Positions 7,035 through 15,080 of a stretch of 64,000 nucleotides of DNA are shown here, one piece after another. The position numbers and the translations under genes were made by a program. Position 1 is the first letter of the stretch; the number at the start of each line of letters is the position of its first letter. The stretch is from Utricularia gibba. Its lineage: Eukaryota > Plantae > Magnoliophyta. Under the pieces are notes generated by a model that saw nothing but the letters and a program-made list of their open reading frames with translations, was not told where the DNA came from and did no database searches. The stretch covers positions 992,001 through 1,056,000 of the forward strand of contig CM007991.1 in the NCBI GenBank assembly GCA_002189035.1. The letters run 5' to 3'.

Positions 7035-8319
7035 TGAAGAAGAGCTAATCCTATATAATCTTGAACGAAATGAATCAAGAAAATCCTGCATAAAGCGGCA
7101 ACATTTTCAATCCACTCAACTATTCAGCAAGTTAAGATTCACAAAAGATTTCAATCGTTTTGACATGCGTTTCATGAAGAATGGTCTAATCTATAAATCA
7201 AGCGAACACTAGCAACACAAAAAAGAATTCACATAATTTAAAGTCAAAAGACGATTGGACTTCACGTGCTTTCAGAATTTCCCATCTTTGGTTCGTGCAA
7301 GAGTCACCCTTCCCGAAACTTCATAGAAACATTATCCAATAACCCATCAACAAGAAACCCCACAAAAATCCGGTTTCTACAGATACCTTCTTCTTACAAC
7401 AATCAAAAATCAACTGAAATCGAAAATTGAAAAAAGTATCCAAGAACTCCTAATCACCATCAGAAAGTAGAAAAAAAAGAAGGGGGACGAAACCAAGTCC
7501 ACAGCTTTAACCCTGCAGTCAACTCGGAAAAGACTTCAACTTTCAAATTTCCCAAAAATTCAGACCAACAAACAATGAACTTGGCCGATTACCTTCGTCA
7601 GGGAAAAGTCCCAGGGGGATAAGAGAATGGGTTCTTGAAGAACTTTATCCCGCAATACACAGAAAGAATCATCAAGTGCCGCAAGGGAATCTCATCTCTG
7701 ATTCCCACTGCCACGTTAGCAGTATCAGAAAGAAAACCCTTGTTTCTTTCCAAGGGTGGGGATGAAATGATGAAAAAAAAAGAAAAAAGAACTTGGAGAA
7801 ACAACCATAAAGGAGTTAGTAGCGCTTGATGCTGGGGTGGCGTGTGGGGAGGAAAGCAGACGAAAACGAGGCGAGGTGGGGTTCTTTCTTTTCTCGACAA
7901 ACACAAAGAAAGCTACTAGAGGCCAAACTTCTGCGGGCCATAATTCCAGAAATTATCTCAAGATTCATCATACAATGACCACAATATCTAATCTTTGCCT
8001 GCGGTTTTTCCGCAGACTGCAACAACCTCCACCATGTCAAACCCCAATTTCTTCGACGATTTGCGGTGAACATACACACGGATGATGCTCGGTATCTACC
8101 CCAAAATACGTCAACGTCAGCATCGGGACACGTTGAAATATGTGAGACAATAATGCAAATACCCTAACCGCGCAATCCCAAATCCCAATCATATTCGACT
8201 GCAGGCGCAGTCGACGAACCGCATCTTCCACCCGCATCACCCCAAAAGATTCAAGATTCCAGTTCCTAGATTCTCTTAACGAGAATGTTTATTTTTTTAA
8301 GAAGAGTATAAATAAATAA

Positions 8320-8326
<7 letters not shown>

Positions 8327-8400
<74 letters not shown>
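8327..8400. repeat. (TA)37 microsatellite
   Basis: Uninterrupted TA dinucleotide run. Confidence 0.98.
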
Positions 8401-8404
<4 letters not shown>

Positions 8405-9697
8405 TATATTTTTCACAATAGAATTACGCATTTTTCGTATTTCTTTAATATGATAAAATGATTATAATCAATATATTCCTTAAAAAATAATTTTTAATTA
8501 ATTCTCTTAGATTTGTATTTTTCTATTTATTTGCCAGAGCGGTCATTCCCATTTCCCATGTTGGGCCTCTTCCTCAATATCATCTGGACCGCAGAGTCTC
8601 TCCAGGCCCAAATGCGTATAATAATTTTCCTTTTTAAGAAAATATAAATATATTCGCCATTTCAAATATAATCAACTTAATATTACAGAAGCATATGTCA
8701 AATTTTTATACAATTTAATTACTTAATAGTAAAAATTGTTCAAAATATATGAAAATAAATCATCTATAAAACACAGATCAATTTTTAATAAAATTACTTT
8801 TAATCGCATTTATAAAAATAATGGGATCCGATAAATTGAATTGAAACCCAAATTCAATCTCGAATTTTAAAATAAAATTATTATAACATGAGGTACATCG
8901 TGGACTTTTTTATCAGTAAAAAAAAAGGTACTCGATTAAATAACATTTTGTACGGTCGACTATTTATATATGCCTTTTTAATTTTTTTTTCAAAAATCGC
9001 ATTGTTCAACTCGTTGACCATCCCATTTTACCAAAAAAAAAATCATTTTCAAAGTTTATTAAATAGTAACTACAAGTTTATCCAAAAAGAAACTAGCAAA
9101 CAAGTCCACTTTATTAATTTGTAATAAAAAAACATCTATAATTTGATCTAAACTTGAGGTAAATTATGTCAATTTTATAAGACTTACTCAATGTTCGAAA
9201 TTAAAAAAATTTCGGATTTCGAATTTGTTCCAAATCGAAATTTCGATCAAATTTCCTAAAATTTCTTCAAAATTTCAAGCATCGCTATTAAGACATGCAT
9301 ATTTTGTTTGAATCATACCCATGTTAAATTCTTTGCAAATTTTATTTTAATTGAACTTAACAACAAAATTTAACGAAAACGACGATTCAATTGAAGCTAT
9401 CCACAACAATGTATTCTCATAATGAATACATAAATGATAACATTTTTTGTTTGTATTCCCTACTTTTTGCCTTTATTGTGCATCTCCCTACATTCTTTTT
9501 GTATTGGCTATAGCACGGCACCCTTGAATGTCCACCGTTCAAAAATATTGGGCATGTGACAGTGGATGTTGTGCAATGTCACGAAAAGATGCTTCTAGTA
9601 ACTTCATTGTTGTAGGCCTCATCCCCCAAGGCATCGAACTCTGAATATTATAGTCTAATTGAAGGGGATAAATGACAAAATATTTACGAGAACGTTG

Positions 9698-9730: not shown

Positions 9731-10519
9731 TCCCCAAAAATGGTAAAAGTCAACTATTGAGTAGAGGGGGTAATTCACAAAATTGGTCATATCGCTTTAT
9801 ATTTCATGCATTTAGGTAACAAAAATTAAACATAGGTTGCTCTCATAATTCAGACAATATCTGACATATCCTCAATTTTCTAATTCATGTTGAGTAGAGG
9901 ACATTGTTTATTCAATGAATGTTATTTTATGAACCTATTCTACGATTTGCTTATAATTTTGGGTTTAATACTTTTTTATTATATATTTCATTAAATTTAA
10001 ATAAGGCGGATCATTTTTTAAAATGGTCATTTCCCATTATATTTCATACATGAAAAATAATTTTACAGTCATTTTTATCATATAGTGATCAATTTTGTGA
10101 TTAAACGGTGGGAGCTGACACACAAAAAGGAAAGTTGTAAAGCGTTGGGGTATATGGAATCCGACGAGCTGCGATCGGCCCCCCTCCCCGTTCGTGCATT
10201 TCACATGCACACTCCGACGTGGAATGCACACACCCACATATGTTTATTTACGCAAAAAAAAAAAATTAAACATCCGGTTGGAGTAAGGAAAATGGCACCG
10301 GAAATGCTTTTTTTTTTTATGTGCACGAATTAAATAAATGGTAAAGCCGTCATCTTCCTCGTCCCCAGTCTATAAATGTGGCCTCTCAGGAGGAATCTAA
10401 TTTACTCCTCCGACATTTCTCTGAATCGTTTAGGTGTTTTTCTTCAGCTTTGATGCCCAGCCAGCCTCGGACTCTCGGGAGCAGGGTTCTGCGTTTGATT
10501 TCTGTCGGGGCGATCGGAG

Positions 10520-13500
10520 ATGCCGGCCAACGGAGGGAAAAAGTTTCAGAAAACCTACTTCGACGTACTGGGCCTCTGCTGCACCTCCGAGGTTCCGGTC
10601 ATCGAGCGGATTCTGACGTCGCTCGAAGGCGTACACGACTTCTCCGTGGTCGTCCCGACGAAAACTGTGGTTGTCGTTCACGACCCGCTTCTCCTTTCTC
10701 CGGCCGAAATAGGTATGCAATTTCAGCTTTCATGTCAAAGCTTCTTTGTTCTGTGGGTGCGACTGCTATACCTTTAGGAAAGGCGGGAGGGGAAAGGTGG
10801 GGTTTTGGGAAAGCTGGTTAGGATTACGTTGGTGAATCTTTTTAAATCTTTTTCCGGGTTGCTGCCGTGTACGGCGGTTTCTGTTGCATACACGTCAGCA
10901 TACGTTTGTTCCGGCGTGGGTGTCTGCTGAATCACGTTTTCAAAGATTTTATTTTATATTTCAGAATTAAAATATAATTGTTTATGGCTCATATACCTTG
11001 TAATATATTTATTTTATTTGAAGACAAGTTTTTTTATAAAACCTTCGGTTTTAATAAATTATGTTTAGTAATCAATTTTATATATCATTTTTTTCACTAT
11101 AATTTAAAATTGGATTTTGACTAAGTTTGTGTATATATTATTCTAAAGAATGATATACTTAAATTTATTATATAGTTATTTGTATAGTAGTTTAGATTAT
11201 TTTAAATTAGTATTTTTAAAATAAAATCAGTAAAGTTGGAAAAAAAAATGTTCATTTAATTTATACTATAAAGGATTAGAATTTTGTATCAATCACAATT
11301 TAAAATCAATATTTCAATTTTATTTGTTGACCGTTGGTGAGAAAAATTGTTGACTTTCATGTGGGGTTTTGTTGACTTCCGGTTGCAGCAAAAGCTCTGA
11401 ACCAGGCGAGATTGGAGGCAAACATCAGGCCAAAAGGAGCGAGGAGCCACAAGAACAGGCTTCCGAGTCCATACGCATTGGCCTGCGGCGCTCTTCTTCT
11501 ACTCTCATTCCTCAAATACGCTTATCGCCCATTCAGATGGCTGACGATCGGCGCAATCGCAGTCGGCATCATTCCGGTGCTGTTCAAGGCAGTTTCTGCG
11601 ATTCGCAATCTCACAATCGAAATCAACATTCTCATTCTCATAGCGGTTGGAGGTTCGATTGCACTGGAGGATTACTGGGAAGCGGCCACCATTGTTTTCT
11701 TGTTCACAATCGCTGAATGGCTCGAATCCAGCGCCAGCCATAAGGTCTGAAATTGAATTCAGGCTTTTGCGTCGATTTAGGGTTTCGGTTTTCTTGTAAT
11801 CGCTGTTATGGAACAGGCAACAGCTGCAATGTCGTCACTGATCGACGTTGTGCCTCAGAGAGCGGTTATAGCTGAAACAGGGGAGGAAATCAATGCTGAT
11901 GAAGTGAAGTTGAACACAGTTCTAGCTGTGAAAGCTGGGGAAGCGATTCCAATTGATGGGGTTGTTGTTGACGGAACTTGTGAGGTTGATGAAAAGTTCT
12001 TGACCGGCGAATCCTTCCCCATAGCGAAGACCAGGGATTCTCCGGTTTGGGCGAGCACAATCAATCTCAATGGTAAGTATCTCCACTGCAACATCACGAA
12101 ATTAATTTAATAATGAGTACTTCACGAAGTTCTGGTTACTGTCTCATCTTATTATGCGCACACTTTTCAGGTTACGTAACAATTCGAACAACAGCGGTAG
12201 CCGAGGATTGTGTTGTTGCCCGGATGGCGAAACTTGTGGAAGAATCACAGAACAAGAAATCTAAGGTCCAGAGGTTCATGGACAAGTGTGCTAAGTACTA
12301 CACTCCTAGTGAGTAGCGCAATATCGTATTCTTTCATTAATTCTTATCGGCATATTAGAATTGCACAACATTTTCGACTTACGGCATTAAAAAAAAATGC
12401 AGCAATCGTCCTGATATCGGCAGCAGTGGCTTTAGTGCCTGTGATTTTCCATCTTCATAATAAGAGGAAGCTTTTTCATTTGGCCCTGGTTATTCTAGTG
12501 AGTGCATGTCCATGCCCACTTCTTCTTTCCACTCCAGTCGCAATGTTCTGTGCCCTATCAGAAGCTGCAAGACTTGGGATTCTGTTCAAAGGAGCTGAAC
12601 ATGTTGAGACTCTGGCAAAGATCAAGATCATTGGATTCGACAAAACGGGAACCATAACGAAAGGGGAATTTCATGTTTCGGATTTCAGTTGTTTACTGGA
12701 TGATATCACAGTAACTGAGCTTCTACATTGGTACTATTTGCATTCAAGTTCTCTTGATTTTTCTTGCCAAACCTCTAGCTGAACAATGTGTGGTTTATTA
12801 TCCAGGATTTGTAGCATGGAGAGCAAATCAAGCCATCCCATGGCTGCTGCGCTGGTGGATTATGGTCGTGAACACAATGTTCAGTCACTCCCTGATAGCG
12901 TGACTGATTTTCAATCTTATCCTGGTGAAGGGATCTCTGGCCAGATTGACGGTAGATATCTATTTGTTGGAAATCGAAAAATTGCATCAAGAGCACGGTT
13001 CACAGGAGGTAAACAGTTTTTTGGTCTCACTTGTTTCTTCTTTGAAGTCTGGTATTACGTCAAATTTCATAACCCCAATATCATATAAAAATCAGTTCTT
13101 TATGACTGAAATGGAGTGGGCAAGGAATTTACGGTGCATGATGATTATTATAGGCTCTTTAGACGGTTATGGTAGAGAAGGCATGTCAACTGGCTACGTT
13201 TTCATTGGTTCATCTCTCGCTGGAATATTCCACCTAACGGATTCTTGTAGAAGCGGAGCAATGGAAGCTCTGAGGGAACTGAAATCAAACAAGATCAAAA
13301 CTGTAATGCTCACTGGAGATTCAAAAGCGGCAGCTGATTACATTCAGGCTCAGCTAGGAGGAATTCTAGACAATGTTCATGCTGAACTTCTACCTACAGA
13401 CAAGGAACATATCGTGAAAGAGCTTCAAGTGGAGGGCAGGACGGCAATGATTGGGGACGGTGTCAATGATGCTCCAGCTTTGGCTGCAGCAGATATCGGG

Positions 13501-14987
13501 ATATCAATGGGAGTCTCCGGCTCTGCCCTTGCAACAGAAACCGGTGATGTGATTCTTATGACGAATGACATTGGGAGAATTCCAAAAGGTATTAAGCTAG
13601 CGAAGAGTACTCGGAGAAAGATCATTGAGAATGTGATTCTATCCTTTTTGACTAAAGGGGCGGTTCTAGTATTGGCCATCGCGGGCCATCCGCTAGTTTG
13701 GGCAGCAGTGCTTGCCGATGTTGGGACATGCTTGTTGGTTATCTTCAACAGCATGTTACTTCTGAAAGGAAATTTTCATTGCAATTATCCTCGCCGTGGA
13801 CATAAATGCACAAAGCCCCCTGGTTGTTCCCCTAATGGGAAAACATGTTGCTCTAGGAATCAACCGGCAAACAGAGGATGTTGTCCACTTGAGTCTCATG
13901 TTCCGGCTAAAAAATGTAGCAGTAGAGGCGGTTGTTGTGCAGATTGGGAGTTAGAGAAGAAGTGTTGTAATCTCAAATCATCCTCCGGCCACACCCATGG
14001 CGGAAAAGTGTGTTGCTCTGAAGATAGACCTGAAAACAAAGCATTTCTTCCGCCAGAGCCTCATCTTCCTGCCAAAAAGTGTAATGACGGAGGCGGTTGT
14101 TGTGGGGGCTTGGAACCAGAGAAGCAGTGTTGTCATCCCAAATCATCCTCCCATCACTCCCATGGTGGAAAATCGTGTTGCTCCGAAGGCCATGCAGAAA
14201 ACAGTGCCTGTCACCCGCCAAAGTCTCATCTTCCTGCCAAAAACTGTGGCGATGGAGGCGATTGCTGTGCAGACTTGGAATCACAGAAGAAGTGCTGCAA
14301 TACCATATCATCTTGCGGCCCCTCCAATGGAGAAAAGCTGCCTTGCCATGAAGATCAACCTGTAAACAAAGTATTTCTTCCCCCAGAGTGCCATCTTCCT
14401 CCCAAAAAGTGCAGTGATGGAGGCGGTTGTTGTGCAGACTTGGAATCACAGAAGTGCTGCAATACCATATCACCTTCCAGCCCCTCCCATGGTGAAAAGC
14501 TGCCTTGCCATGAAGATCAACCTATAAACAAAGTATATGTTCCCCAGAGTGCCATCTTCCTCCCAAAAAGTGCAGTGATGGAGGCGGTTGTTGTGCGGAC
14601 TTGGAATCACAGAAGAAGTGCTGTGATCCCAAATCATCGGCTGGCCAAGCCGCAGAAGATGCAGACTGCGCCCGTCGTCCTCACGGCCACCGTGAAGGAC
14701 ATTCTCACGAAAGGAAAACTGATAAAAGCCTCCAACCACCGGGTAAGTGCTGTCCCACTAAATCCTCCTCCTCCTGTCATCACAAGCACGGCGGAGGTGA
14801 ACAACATAGCTCCCCCCATTGCCACGCCACTGGAGATGGAAAACATTCCGATCATGACCACGGTCACCAGCACGGCGATCCGCCGTTGGCGGTGAATCAG
14901 CAACACGATTGCTGCTCAAGCCATGATCATGAAAATCTTCAAACTGTGCGAAGCGAGATACACAAGAGTAGCTGCATCCATTATTAG
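10520..14987 (+). CDS. HMA2: P1B-2 heavy-metal (Zn/Cd) ATPase, HMA2/HMA4-like, with a long Cys/His-rich C-terminal tail
   Basis: N-terminal metal-binding domain [15 protein letters not shown]6 [12 protein letters not shown] phosphorylation site, SSHP, TGD and GDGVNDAP. Seven coding exons (exon 1 10520-10712, exon 2 from 11389). The tail continues to TAG at 14987 once one C is restored at 14542-14545. Assignment to HMA2 versus HMA4 is not resolved. Confidence 0.93.
13831..14651 (+). repeat. Five tandem ~165-bp coding repeats (55-aa Cys/His-rich unit) in the HMA tail
   Basis: Unit starts at 13831, 13996, 14161, 14326 and 14488 (spacings 165, 165, 165, 162). Consensus approx. HGGK.CC.E..P.NK...[28 protein letters not shown]... 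Confidence 0.95.
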
Positions 14988-15056
14988 GAATAGCCTGATT
15001 TGGTTGGTATCCTTGACTTTGGTAATTTATGATCCATATTCCAAATTAAAAAAAAC

Positions 15057-15080
15057 ATATATATATATATATATATATAT
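15057..15080. repeat. (AT)12 microsatellite
   Basis: Perfect AT run just 3' of the HMA stop codon. Confidence 0.95.

Follow-up and report, generated by a model that had tools for sequence, protein, structure and literature searches.

A putative Zn/Cd pump of Utricularia gibba with a C-terminal tail of tandem, lineage-specific di-cysteine units

How does a metal pump of a Utricularia species come to end in a series of nearly regular Cys/His-rich repeats, and what might such a tail do for the pump? The question is raised by a stretch of 64,000 nucleotides of the U. gibba genome (the window, on which all positions given here are counted), in which a first-pass annotation had described an HMA-type Zn/Cd pump with five tandem units of 55 residues in its tail. 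HMA2 and HMA4 pumps control the movement of Zn and Cd from root to shoot and bear on biofortification, on Cd in food and on hyperaccumulation.

The structure of the gene was determined from Logan contigs of two RNA runs of different studies, X1 and X6, which show that the gene is expressed. It lies on the + strand, comprises seven exons and encodes an ATPase of the HMA2/HMA4 type (P1B-2); the repeat array is located in the last exon. The exons are as follows.

10520-10712, + strand: exon 1, start codon and N-terminal HMA metal-binding domain with CCTSE (Pfam HMA, PF00403, E 1.8e-6; splice joint in RNA contigs of X1 and X6; GT-AG)
11389-11744, + strand: exon 2, first transmembrane helices (joints in RNA contigs; GT-AG; frame continuous)
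11817-12072, + strand: exon 3, actuator domain with TGES at residue 246 (Pfam E1-E2_ATPase, E 4e-19; joints)
12171-12308, + strand: exon 4 (joints in RNA contigs; frame)
12403-12730, + strand: exon 5, TM6 with CPCx4SxP and the DKTGT phosphorylation site (motifs at residues 350 and 394; joints)
12806-13008, + strand: exon 6, nucleotide-binding domain with SSHP at residue 432 (joints; motif)
13154-14987, + strand: exon 7, coding part, with the end of the P-domain, TM7 (Nx7K), TM8 (ADVG) and the entire C-terminal tail (Pfam Hydrolase, E 4.5e-21; RNA contigs)

All six introns (10713-11388, 11745-11816, 12073-12170, 12309-12402, 12731-12805 and 13009-13153, boundaries given after cut shifts) are of the GT-AG type. 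RNA contigs cover 13152-14361 and 14567-15042, so that the exon 7 transcript reaches at least to about 15042, and no intron was found in the tail within these two spans. With five of its six introns (10713-13153) measuring 72-145 nt, the gene is very compact. An (AT)12 microsatellite is located at 15057-15080, just beyond the 3′ end of the transcript as given by the RNA contigs, and another long microsatellite of the TA/AT type is found upstream of the gene at 8297-8431.

Pfam domains were assigned to 10520-10720 (HMA), 11808-12110 (E1-E2_ATPase) and 13102-14538 (HAD-type hydrolase). The spliced protein has all core motifs of P-type ATPases (TGES at residue 246, DKTGT at 394, SSHP at 432 and GDGVNDAP at 592), and its N-terminal HMA domain carries CCxxE in place of CxxC (CCTSE, residue 20). 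The P1B-2 subgroup is reportedly marked by the transmembrane signatures CPCx4SxP (TM6), Nx7K (TM7) and DxG (TM8) (Arguello 2003). These signatures are present at residue 350 (CPCx4SxP), residue 651 (NVILSFLTK, Nx7K) and residue 679 (ADVG), which completes the hallmark set of the pump from CCTSE and TGES through CPCx4SxP to Nx7K and ADVG.

The best database matches were HMA2/3/4-like proteins of the Lamiales, with 72-75% identity even in the conserved core. Among the best 120 matches, the top of the list and all named proteins are cadmium/zinc-transporting ATPases HMA2, HMA3 or HMA4, many others being entered as 'hypothetical protein' or unnamed; the Pfam hydrolase domain was detected in 120 of 120 and the E1-E2 ATPase domain in nearly all, with E values down to 2e-90. 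A FastTree phylogeny of 101 cores placed the gene at the base of the core Lamiales clade on a long branch. The long branch together with the compact gene suggests a fast-evolving lineage of the Lamiales with a small genome. The species' own protein was not among the database proteins in the length range searched, and tblastn with the spliced protein as query revealed no second HMA gene within the 64-kb window. The signatures, the Pfam domains and the HMA2/3/4-named relatives bear out the initial assignment as an HMA Zn/Cd pump. Judged together with the reading of its tail developed below, the gene is likely to be an intact, expressed P1B-2 Zn2+/Cd2+ export ATPase of a Lamiales lineage, with transport activity predicted from these motifs.

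Downstream of TM8 the gene encodes a Cys/His-rich tail that falls into the following parts.

13765-14984, + strand: Cys/His-rich C-terminal tail, cytosolic, 405 aa when frame-corrected, with 16 CC pairs
13831-13995, + strand: unit 1, 165 bp, 9 Cys and 4 CC, the oldest and most diverged
13996-14160, + strand: unit 2, 165 bp, 7 Cys and 3 CC
14161-14325, + strand: unit 3, 165 bp, 9 Cys and 3 CC
14326-14487, + strand: unit 4, 162 bp, one Lys codon lost, 7 Cys and 2 CC
14488-14651, + strand: unit 5, 164 bp as assembled (one base short), its end grading into the unique His-rich region
14652-14987, + strand: unique His-rich end with two further CC pairs and the stop codon, in frame only with five C residues at 14542-14545 (covered by RNA contigs of X1 and X6)

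TRF detected an array with a period of 165 bp at 13925-14638 (4.4 copies, 79% matches, score 773) and, within it, a younger sub-array with a period of 162 bp at 14227-14615 (2.4 copies, 91%). The 13-nt motif GGCG[GA]TTG[TC]TGTG recurs at 13927, 14092, 14257, 14422 and 14583, with spacings of 165, 165, 165 and 161 nt. At the protein level, an ungapped lag scan with shuffles showed that self-similarity of the tail peaks at lag 55 (score 490 versus a shuffle mean of 44); blastp of tails against themselves gave the main diagonal only. The five tandem 55-aa Cys/His units with two to four CC pairs each that the first-pass annotation had described are confirmed. Its unit lengths of 165/165/165/162/~165 bp were measured as 165/165/165/162/164 bp, in phase from 13831, and its count of 16 CC pairs in the frame-corrected tail is exact. 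The 405 residues of this tail (X at the break) include 50 Cys and 38 His, and 14 of the 16 CC pairs are located inside the array. That a His-rich end follows the array also holds after repair of a 1-bp frameshift in unit 5; as assembled, the reading frame there is the wrong one.

Units 4 and 5 are indeed the most similar pair, but to call them nearly identical, as had been done, overstates a nucleotide identity of 88.7% and a dS of approximately 0.19. Older pairs of units are 65-77% identical, with dS values from 0.36 to 0.96. The suggestion that the array is still expanding is not supported either, given the dS of its youngest pair and the finding described below that a related organism already carries units 2 and 3. 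Tuning by copy number in this species, also suggested at first, is likewise unsupported, as short-read contigs break inside the young units. The dN/dS values between units range from 0.35 to 0.7, so the units are constrained, though not strongly. Sixteen of the 55 columns are invariant across the five units, six of them Cys, and follow the frame H-x-P-x-K-x-C-x3-G-x-CC-x3-E-x2-K-x-CC. Since this frame is invariant, the array multiplies di-Cys sites.

To which sequences is the unit related? No Pfam family, metallothionein families included, matched the tail or the 55-aa unit at E ≤ 0.01. When the tail (ORF residues 296-538) was compared with the proteins of 361-1148 aa in a set of 5.8 billion, nothing was found at E ≤ 1e-3. 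Among 1.84 billion representatives of any length, no plant homologue was found and two weak matches appeared (E 8e-7 and 6e-5), both short proteins with an N-terminal hydrophobic leader and Cys-bearing repeats of about 59 aa, which were judged from their sequences to be unrelated. An HMM built from the five units and run against 120 orthologues gave no HMA protein below E 0.03. The earlier remark that the unit is not a described domain therefore agrees with both the Pfam and the HMM searches.

A short core of the unit was nevertheless recovered in other pumps. There, the motif D[ILVW]ES[QE]K after a Cys pair, mostly in the form CCxD[IL]ESQKKC, occurs as a single copy at about residue 40 of the tail, in Sesamum, Paulownia, Primulina, Henckelia, Penstemon and Solanum dulcamara. 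The Utricularia tail contains three exact matches to CCxD[IL]ESQKKC, in units 3-5, while units 1 and 2 carry diverged versions. Because the core is single-copy in relatives, the array is a lineage-specific amplification of an ancestral tail segment.

We also asked how regular the tails of other HMA pumps are, the first-pass annotation having started from the premise that they are usually not regular repeat arrays. This premise has to be given up. In 100 orthologue tails of at least 100 aa, strong tandem repeats, defined by an off-diagonal ungapped score of at least 200 compared with shuffle means of 26-56, were present in 22, with periods of 12-108 aa, and a repeat tail has been published for BjHMA4R (PMC6394093). 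Examples from the scan are listed below by the length of the tail unit.

Impatiens glandulifera: 47 aa, about 5 copies, two CC each
Salix, Populus and Dovyalis (Salicaceae): 22 aa, about 7 copies
Primulina and Henckelia (Gesneriaceae): 56 aa
Mikania: 59 aa
Lonicera: 62 aa
Abeliophyllum: 103 aa
Theobroma and Solanum dulcamara: 108 aa
several Asteraceae: 12-36 aa

These HMA2/3/4-like proteins of eudicots share with the Utricularia protein an architecture of conserved pump plus tandem Cys/His units, but each lineage has a unit of its own, and the HMM of the Utricularia unit matches none of them. A common origin with the Gesneriaceae unit of 56 aa was considered and rejected: hhalign gave a probability of 0.5%, hmmsearch was not significant and only DLxSQ aligns. 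As the two units are not detectably related, the amplifications are independent. Taken over all tails, the pattern looks like a recurrent independent amplification of HMA2/3/4 tail units across eudicots, whereas in the literature searched tail-repeat amplification in HMA pumps was described for Brassica only. The number of 16 CC pairs ties the maximum among the 112 tails examined.

We propose that repeated unequal crossing-over amplified a segment of about 55 residues, built around the ancestral single-copy element CCxD[IL]ESQKKC, and so would have enlarged the cytosolic C-terminal extension; the latest event would have left the 162-bp, 91% sub-array. The tail would then most likely offer additional high-affinity thiolate sites for Zn and Cd beside the pump. 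It could act as a cytosolic chelator or sensor that donates metal to the pump, regulates it or does both, roles also proposed for HMA4c, and it perhaps helps in targeting. By analogy with Arabidopsis HMA4c and Brassica HMA4R, the tail is most likely a disordered, multi-site domain that binds Zn and Cd with high affinity, and from the same proteins we infer metal binding, its stoichiometry and a regulatory effect for the Utricularia tail. AlphaFold2 run on the tail as a single sequence gave a pLDDT of 39 and no confident fold. Neighbours in the ESM Atlas were Cys/Pro-rich compositional look-alikes only (keratin-associated, cornifin-like and cornified-envelope proteins), and recognition was low. 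Disorder of the metal-free tail would fit both model results, though neither is proof of it. As a whole, an expressed P1B-2 pump with a di-Cys tail amplified by crossing-over and predicted to bind metal is the explanation that we consider likely.

Alternatively, the repeats might have arisen neutrally, by slippage or unequal crossing-over in a tail that is disordered and constrained in composition; only the overall content of Cys and His would then count, and the number of units would be of no particular consequence for function. HMA tails evolve fast and carry unrelated repeats of many periods (12-108 aa) across families, and the Utricularia unit is without detectable homology to the 56-aa unit of the Gesneriaceae (hhalign 0.5%). 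The dN/dS of 0.35-0.7 amounts to moderate constraint only, and AtHMA2 is almost fully functional without its tail (PMC6255694). However, six Cys and ten other columns have stayed invariant across units in spite of dS values up to approximately 0.9, and the di-Cys motifs of HMA4 are required in planta, fewer motifs binding less Zn (PMC6255694). On balance, we regard a purely neutral origin as doubtful, though it deserves to be kept in mind.

The proposed amplification of a di-Cys segment could also be carried a step further. Such amplification might be a recurrent, independent and selected way of resetting the metal-binding capacity or set-point of the pump, used with unrelated units in at least eight eudicot families. 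The Utricularia locus would then be a live case, in which the number of units or the length of the tail, the C4/C5 difference in unit 5 included, varies between accessions and affects the handling of Zn and Cd. This extension is speculative and we think it improbable in its full form.

The frame break in unit 5 bears on the length of the protein. Two homopolymer runs are relevant here.

14542-14545, + strand: run of four C (C4), site of the frame break in the assembly; the paralogous place in the preceding copy has C5
10507-10510, + strand: run of four G in the 5′ leader, read as G5 in the RNA run X1 and the DNA run X9

As assembled with C4, the ORF continues out of frame to a stop at 14895 and encodes 1071 aa. 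With one more C it extends to 14987 and 1102 aa, so that it encodes the remainder of unit 5 together with the His-rich end. An RNA contig of X6 has the extra C behind 14541; X1 and X9 have no contig across this position. The reading of the G run is informative in this respect. X1 is otherwise identical to the window over the listed contig pieces (approximately 3.2 kb), and the assembly of the window demonstrably under-calls the homopolymer at 10507-10510, which makes other single-base frameshifts in this genome assembly suspect. The corrected frame downstream of the break is open for 147 codons and has a sequence typical of the tail. On the basis of the priors and of this open frame, the frameshift in unit 5 is most likely a homopolymer under-call as well.

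If the reference accession instead truly carried C4, the pump would have 1071 aa and end in 118 out-of-frame residues. It would lack half of unit 5 as well as the His-rich end, and with them 4 of the 16 CC pairs, which would represent natural within-species loss-of-tail variation. The window itself reads C4, and in-frame indels in the tail, as seen in X9, likewise distinguish the accessions. Six sampled words around the C run gave an ambiguous look-up: X3 and X22, runs from the study of the window-matching X1, hold the maximum of four of the six, compared with two in the C5-bearing X6, and the additional ones could span the site. Yet no run holds the complete set of six, an under-call is proven 4 kb upstream in the same assembly, the downstream frame is fully open over its 147 tail-typical codons, and a frameshift polymorphism is a priori rare in a constrained gene. 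A real C4 allele is therefore rather unlikely. The X9 indels consist of a CCA insertion behind 14821 and loose ends in a TCC repeat at the Ser run 14763-14775; both are polymorphisms that alter the length of the unique His/Ser-rich end but keep the frame.

Independent contigs were also used to examine whether the array exists as assembled. In the RNA run X1, in X6 (RNA from another accession) and in X9 (DNA from a third accession that differs by 17 SNPs in 3.6 kb), the stretch from the ATPase core to 14361, which takes in units 1-3 and the start of unit 4, is covered by single contigs. Separate contigs hold sequence specific for unit 4 (14406-14523, X9 DNA) and, from 14567 onward, the transition from unit 5 into the unique end. 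The contigs break at 14362-14405 and 14524-14566, because the stretches common to units 4 and 5 exceed the word length of the assembler, and the count of units 4 and 5 is thus unbridged by independent data. The depth of X9 showed no excess over the array. A 212-nt contig of X16, from organism B, corresponds to 14114-14325 and shows five differences from the window; the array, or at least its units 2 and 3, is therefore older than the split from that organism. In an X9 contig, three clustered changes at 14374-14377 (T>A, T>A, C>G) lie at the end of sequence of the unit 3 type and bring it nearer to the paralogous place of the next unit; they could reflect gene conversion between units or a contig of the neighbouring unit aligned one unit off.

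An assembly artefact in the array or in its number of units, for which the breaks inside the two youngest units and their unbridged number might speak, is hardly credible in view of the single contigs from three independent runs, the independent sequence specific for units 4 and 5, the normal X9 depth and the differences in sequence among all five units, which largely refute it except for the count of units 4 and 5.

The breadth of independent tail-repeat amplification across eudicot HMA pumps is perhaps a more useful result than the locus itself. Of the orthologue tails examined, about a fifth consist of tandem repeats peculiar to their lineage, suggesting a general evolutionary route for these pumps. 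The locus, on the other hand, provides a clean natural series of modules with two to four CC pairs, which could serve to measure binding capacity as a function of unit number.

The closest known counterparts are the HMA4 tails of Arabidopsis and Brassica. HMA4c of Arabidopsis thaliana and A. halleri is likewise a plant-specific cytosolic tail behind TM8 of a P1B-2 pump, and each of the two, with a length of about 400-470 aa, has a His-rich end and many di-Cys motifs (16 in Utricularia, 13 in AtHMA4). Lekeux et al. (2018) showed that the di-Cys motifs of HMA4c bind Zn in the nanomolar range and are needed in planta, with less Zn bound when motifs are fewer, whereas the His stretch is dispensable (PMC6255694). 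HMA4c diverges fast, the tails of A. thaliana and A. halleri being 64% identical, and the roles of the tail in Arabidopsis are disputed; AtHMA2 works almost fully without it (PMC6255694). There is no detectable sequence similarity between HMA4c and the Utricularia tail. The His-rich end of the latter consists of interrupted HxH clusters in place of the His11 stretch of HMA4c, and unlike HMA4c it has 14 of its 16 CC pairs in a clear periodic array of 55 aa. The number of CC pairs is high, but not exceptional, since TcHMA4 has 16 and BjHMA4 17 (PMC6394093), while 13 and 6 are found in AtHMA4 and AtHMA2 (PMC6255694).

Metallothioneins resemble the Utricularia tail in being rich in Cys and probably disordered without metal, and metal-thiolate sites are expected in both. 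They differ in that there is no sequence relation, that CC rather than CxC or CxxC dominates here and that the Utricularia array is fused to a membrane pump.

BjHMA4R is a region of four CC-bearing repeats near the last transmembrane helix of Brassica juncea HMA4, described by Wang et al. (2019; PMC6394093). It is built on a conserved CCGDKK, occurs in 1-10 copies among Brassicaceae genomes, to which it is reported to be restricted, and binds Cd in yeast and E. coli (PMC6394093). As in Utricularia, a CC-bearing segment near the last transmembrane helix is tandemly repeated around an ancestral motif, CCGDKK in the one case and CCxD[IL]ESQKKC in the other. The CCGDKK motif is absent from the Utricularia tail, and the two units, from Brassicales and Lamiales, are unrelated, being set apart by description and not by direct alignment. 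Each repeat of BjHMA4R has one CC pair, compared with two to four CC pairs and seven to nine Cys in the Utricularia unit. From these comparisons, BjHMA4R and the Utricularia array appear to be of the same kind but of different sequence families. The explanation of the Utricularia locus is an ordinary one, and the locus is a new, lineage-specific example of a known and recurrent phenomenon rather than a new principle.
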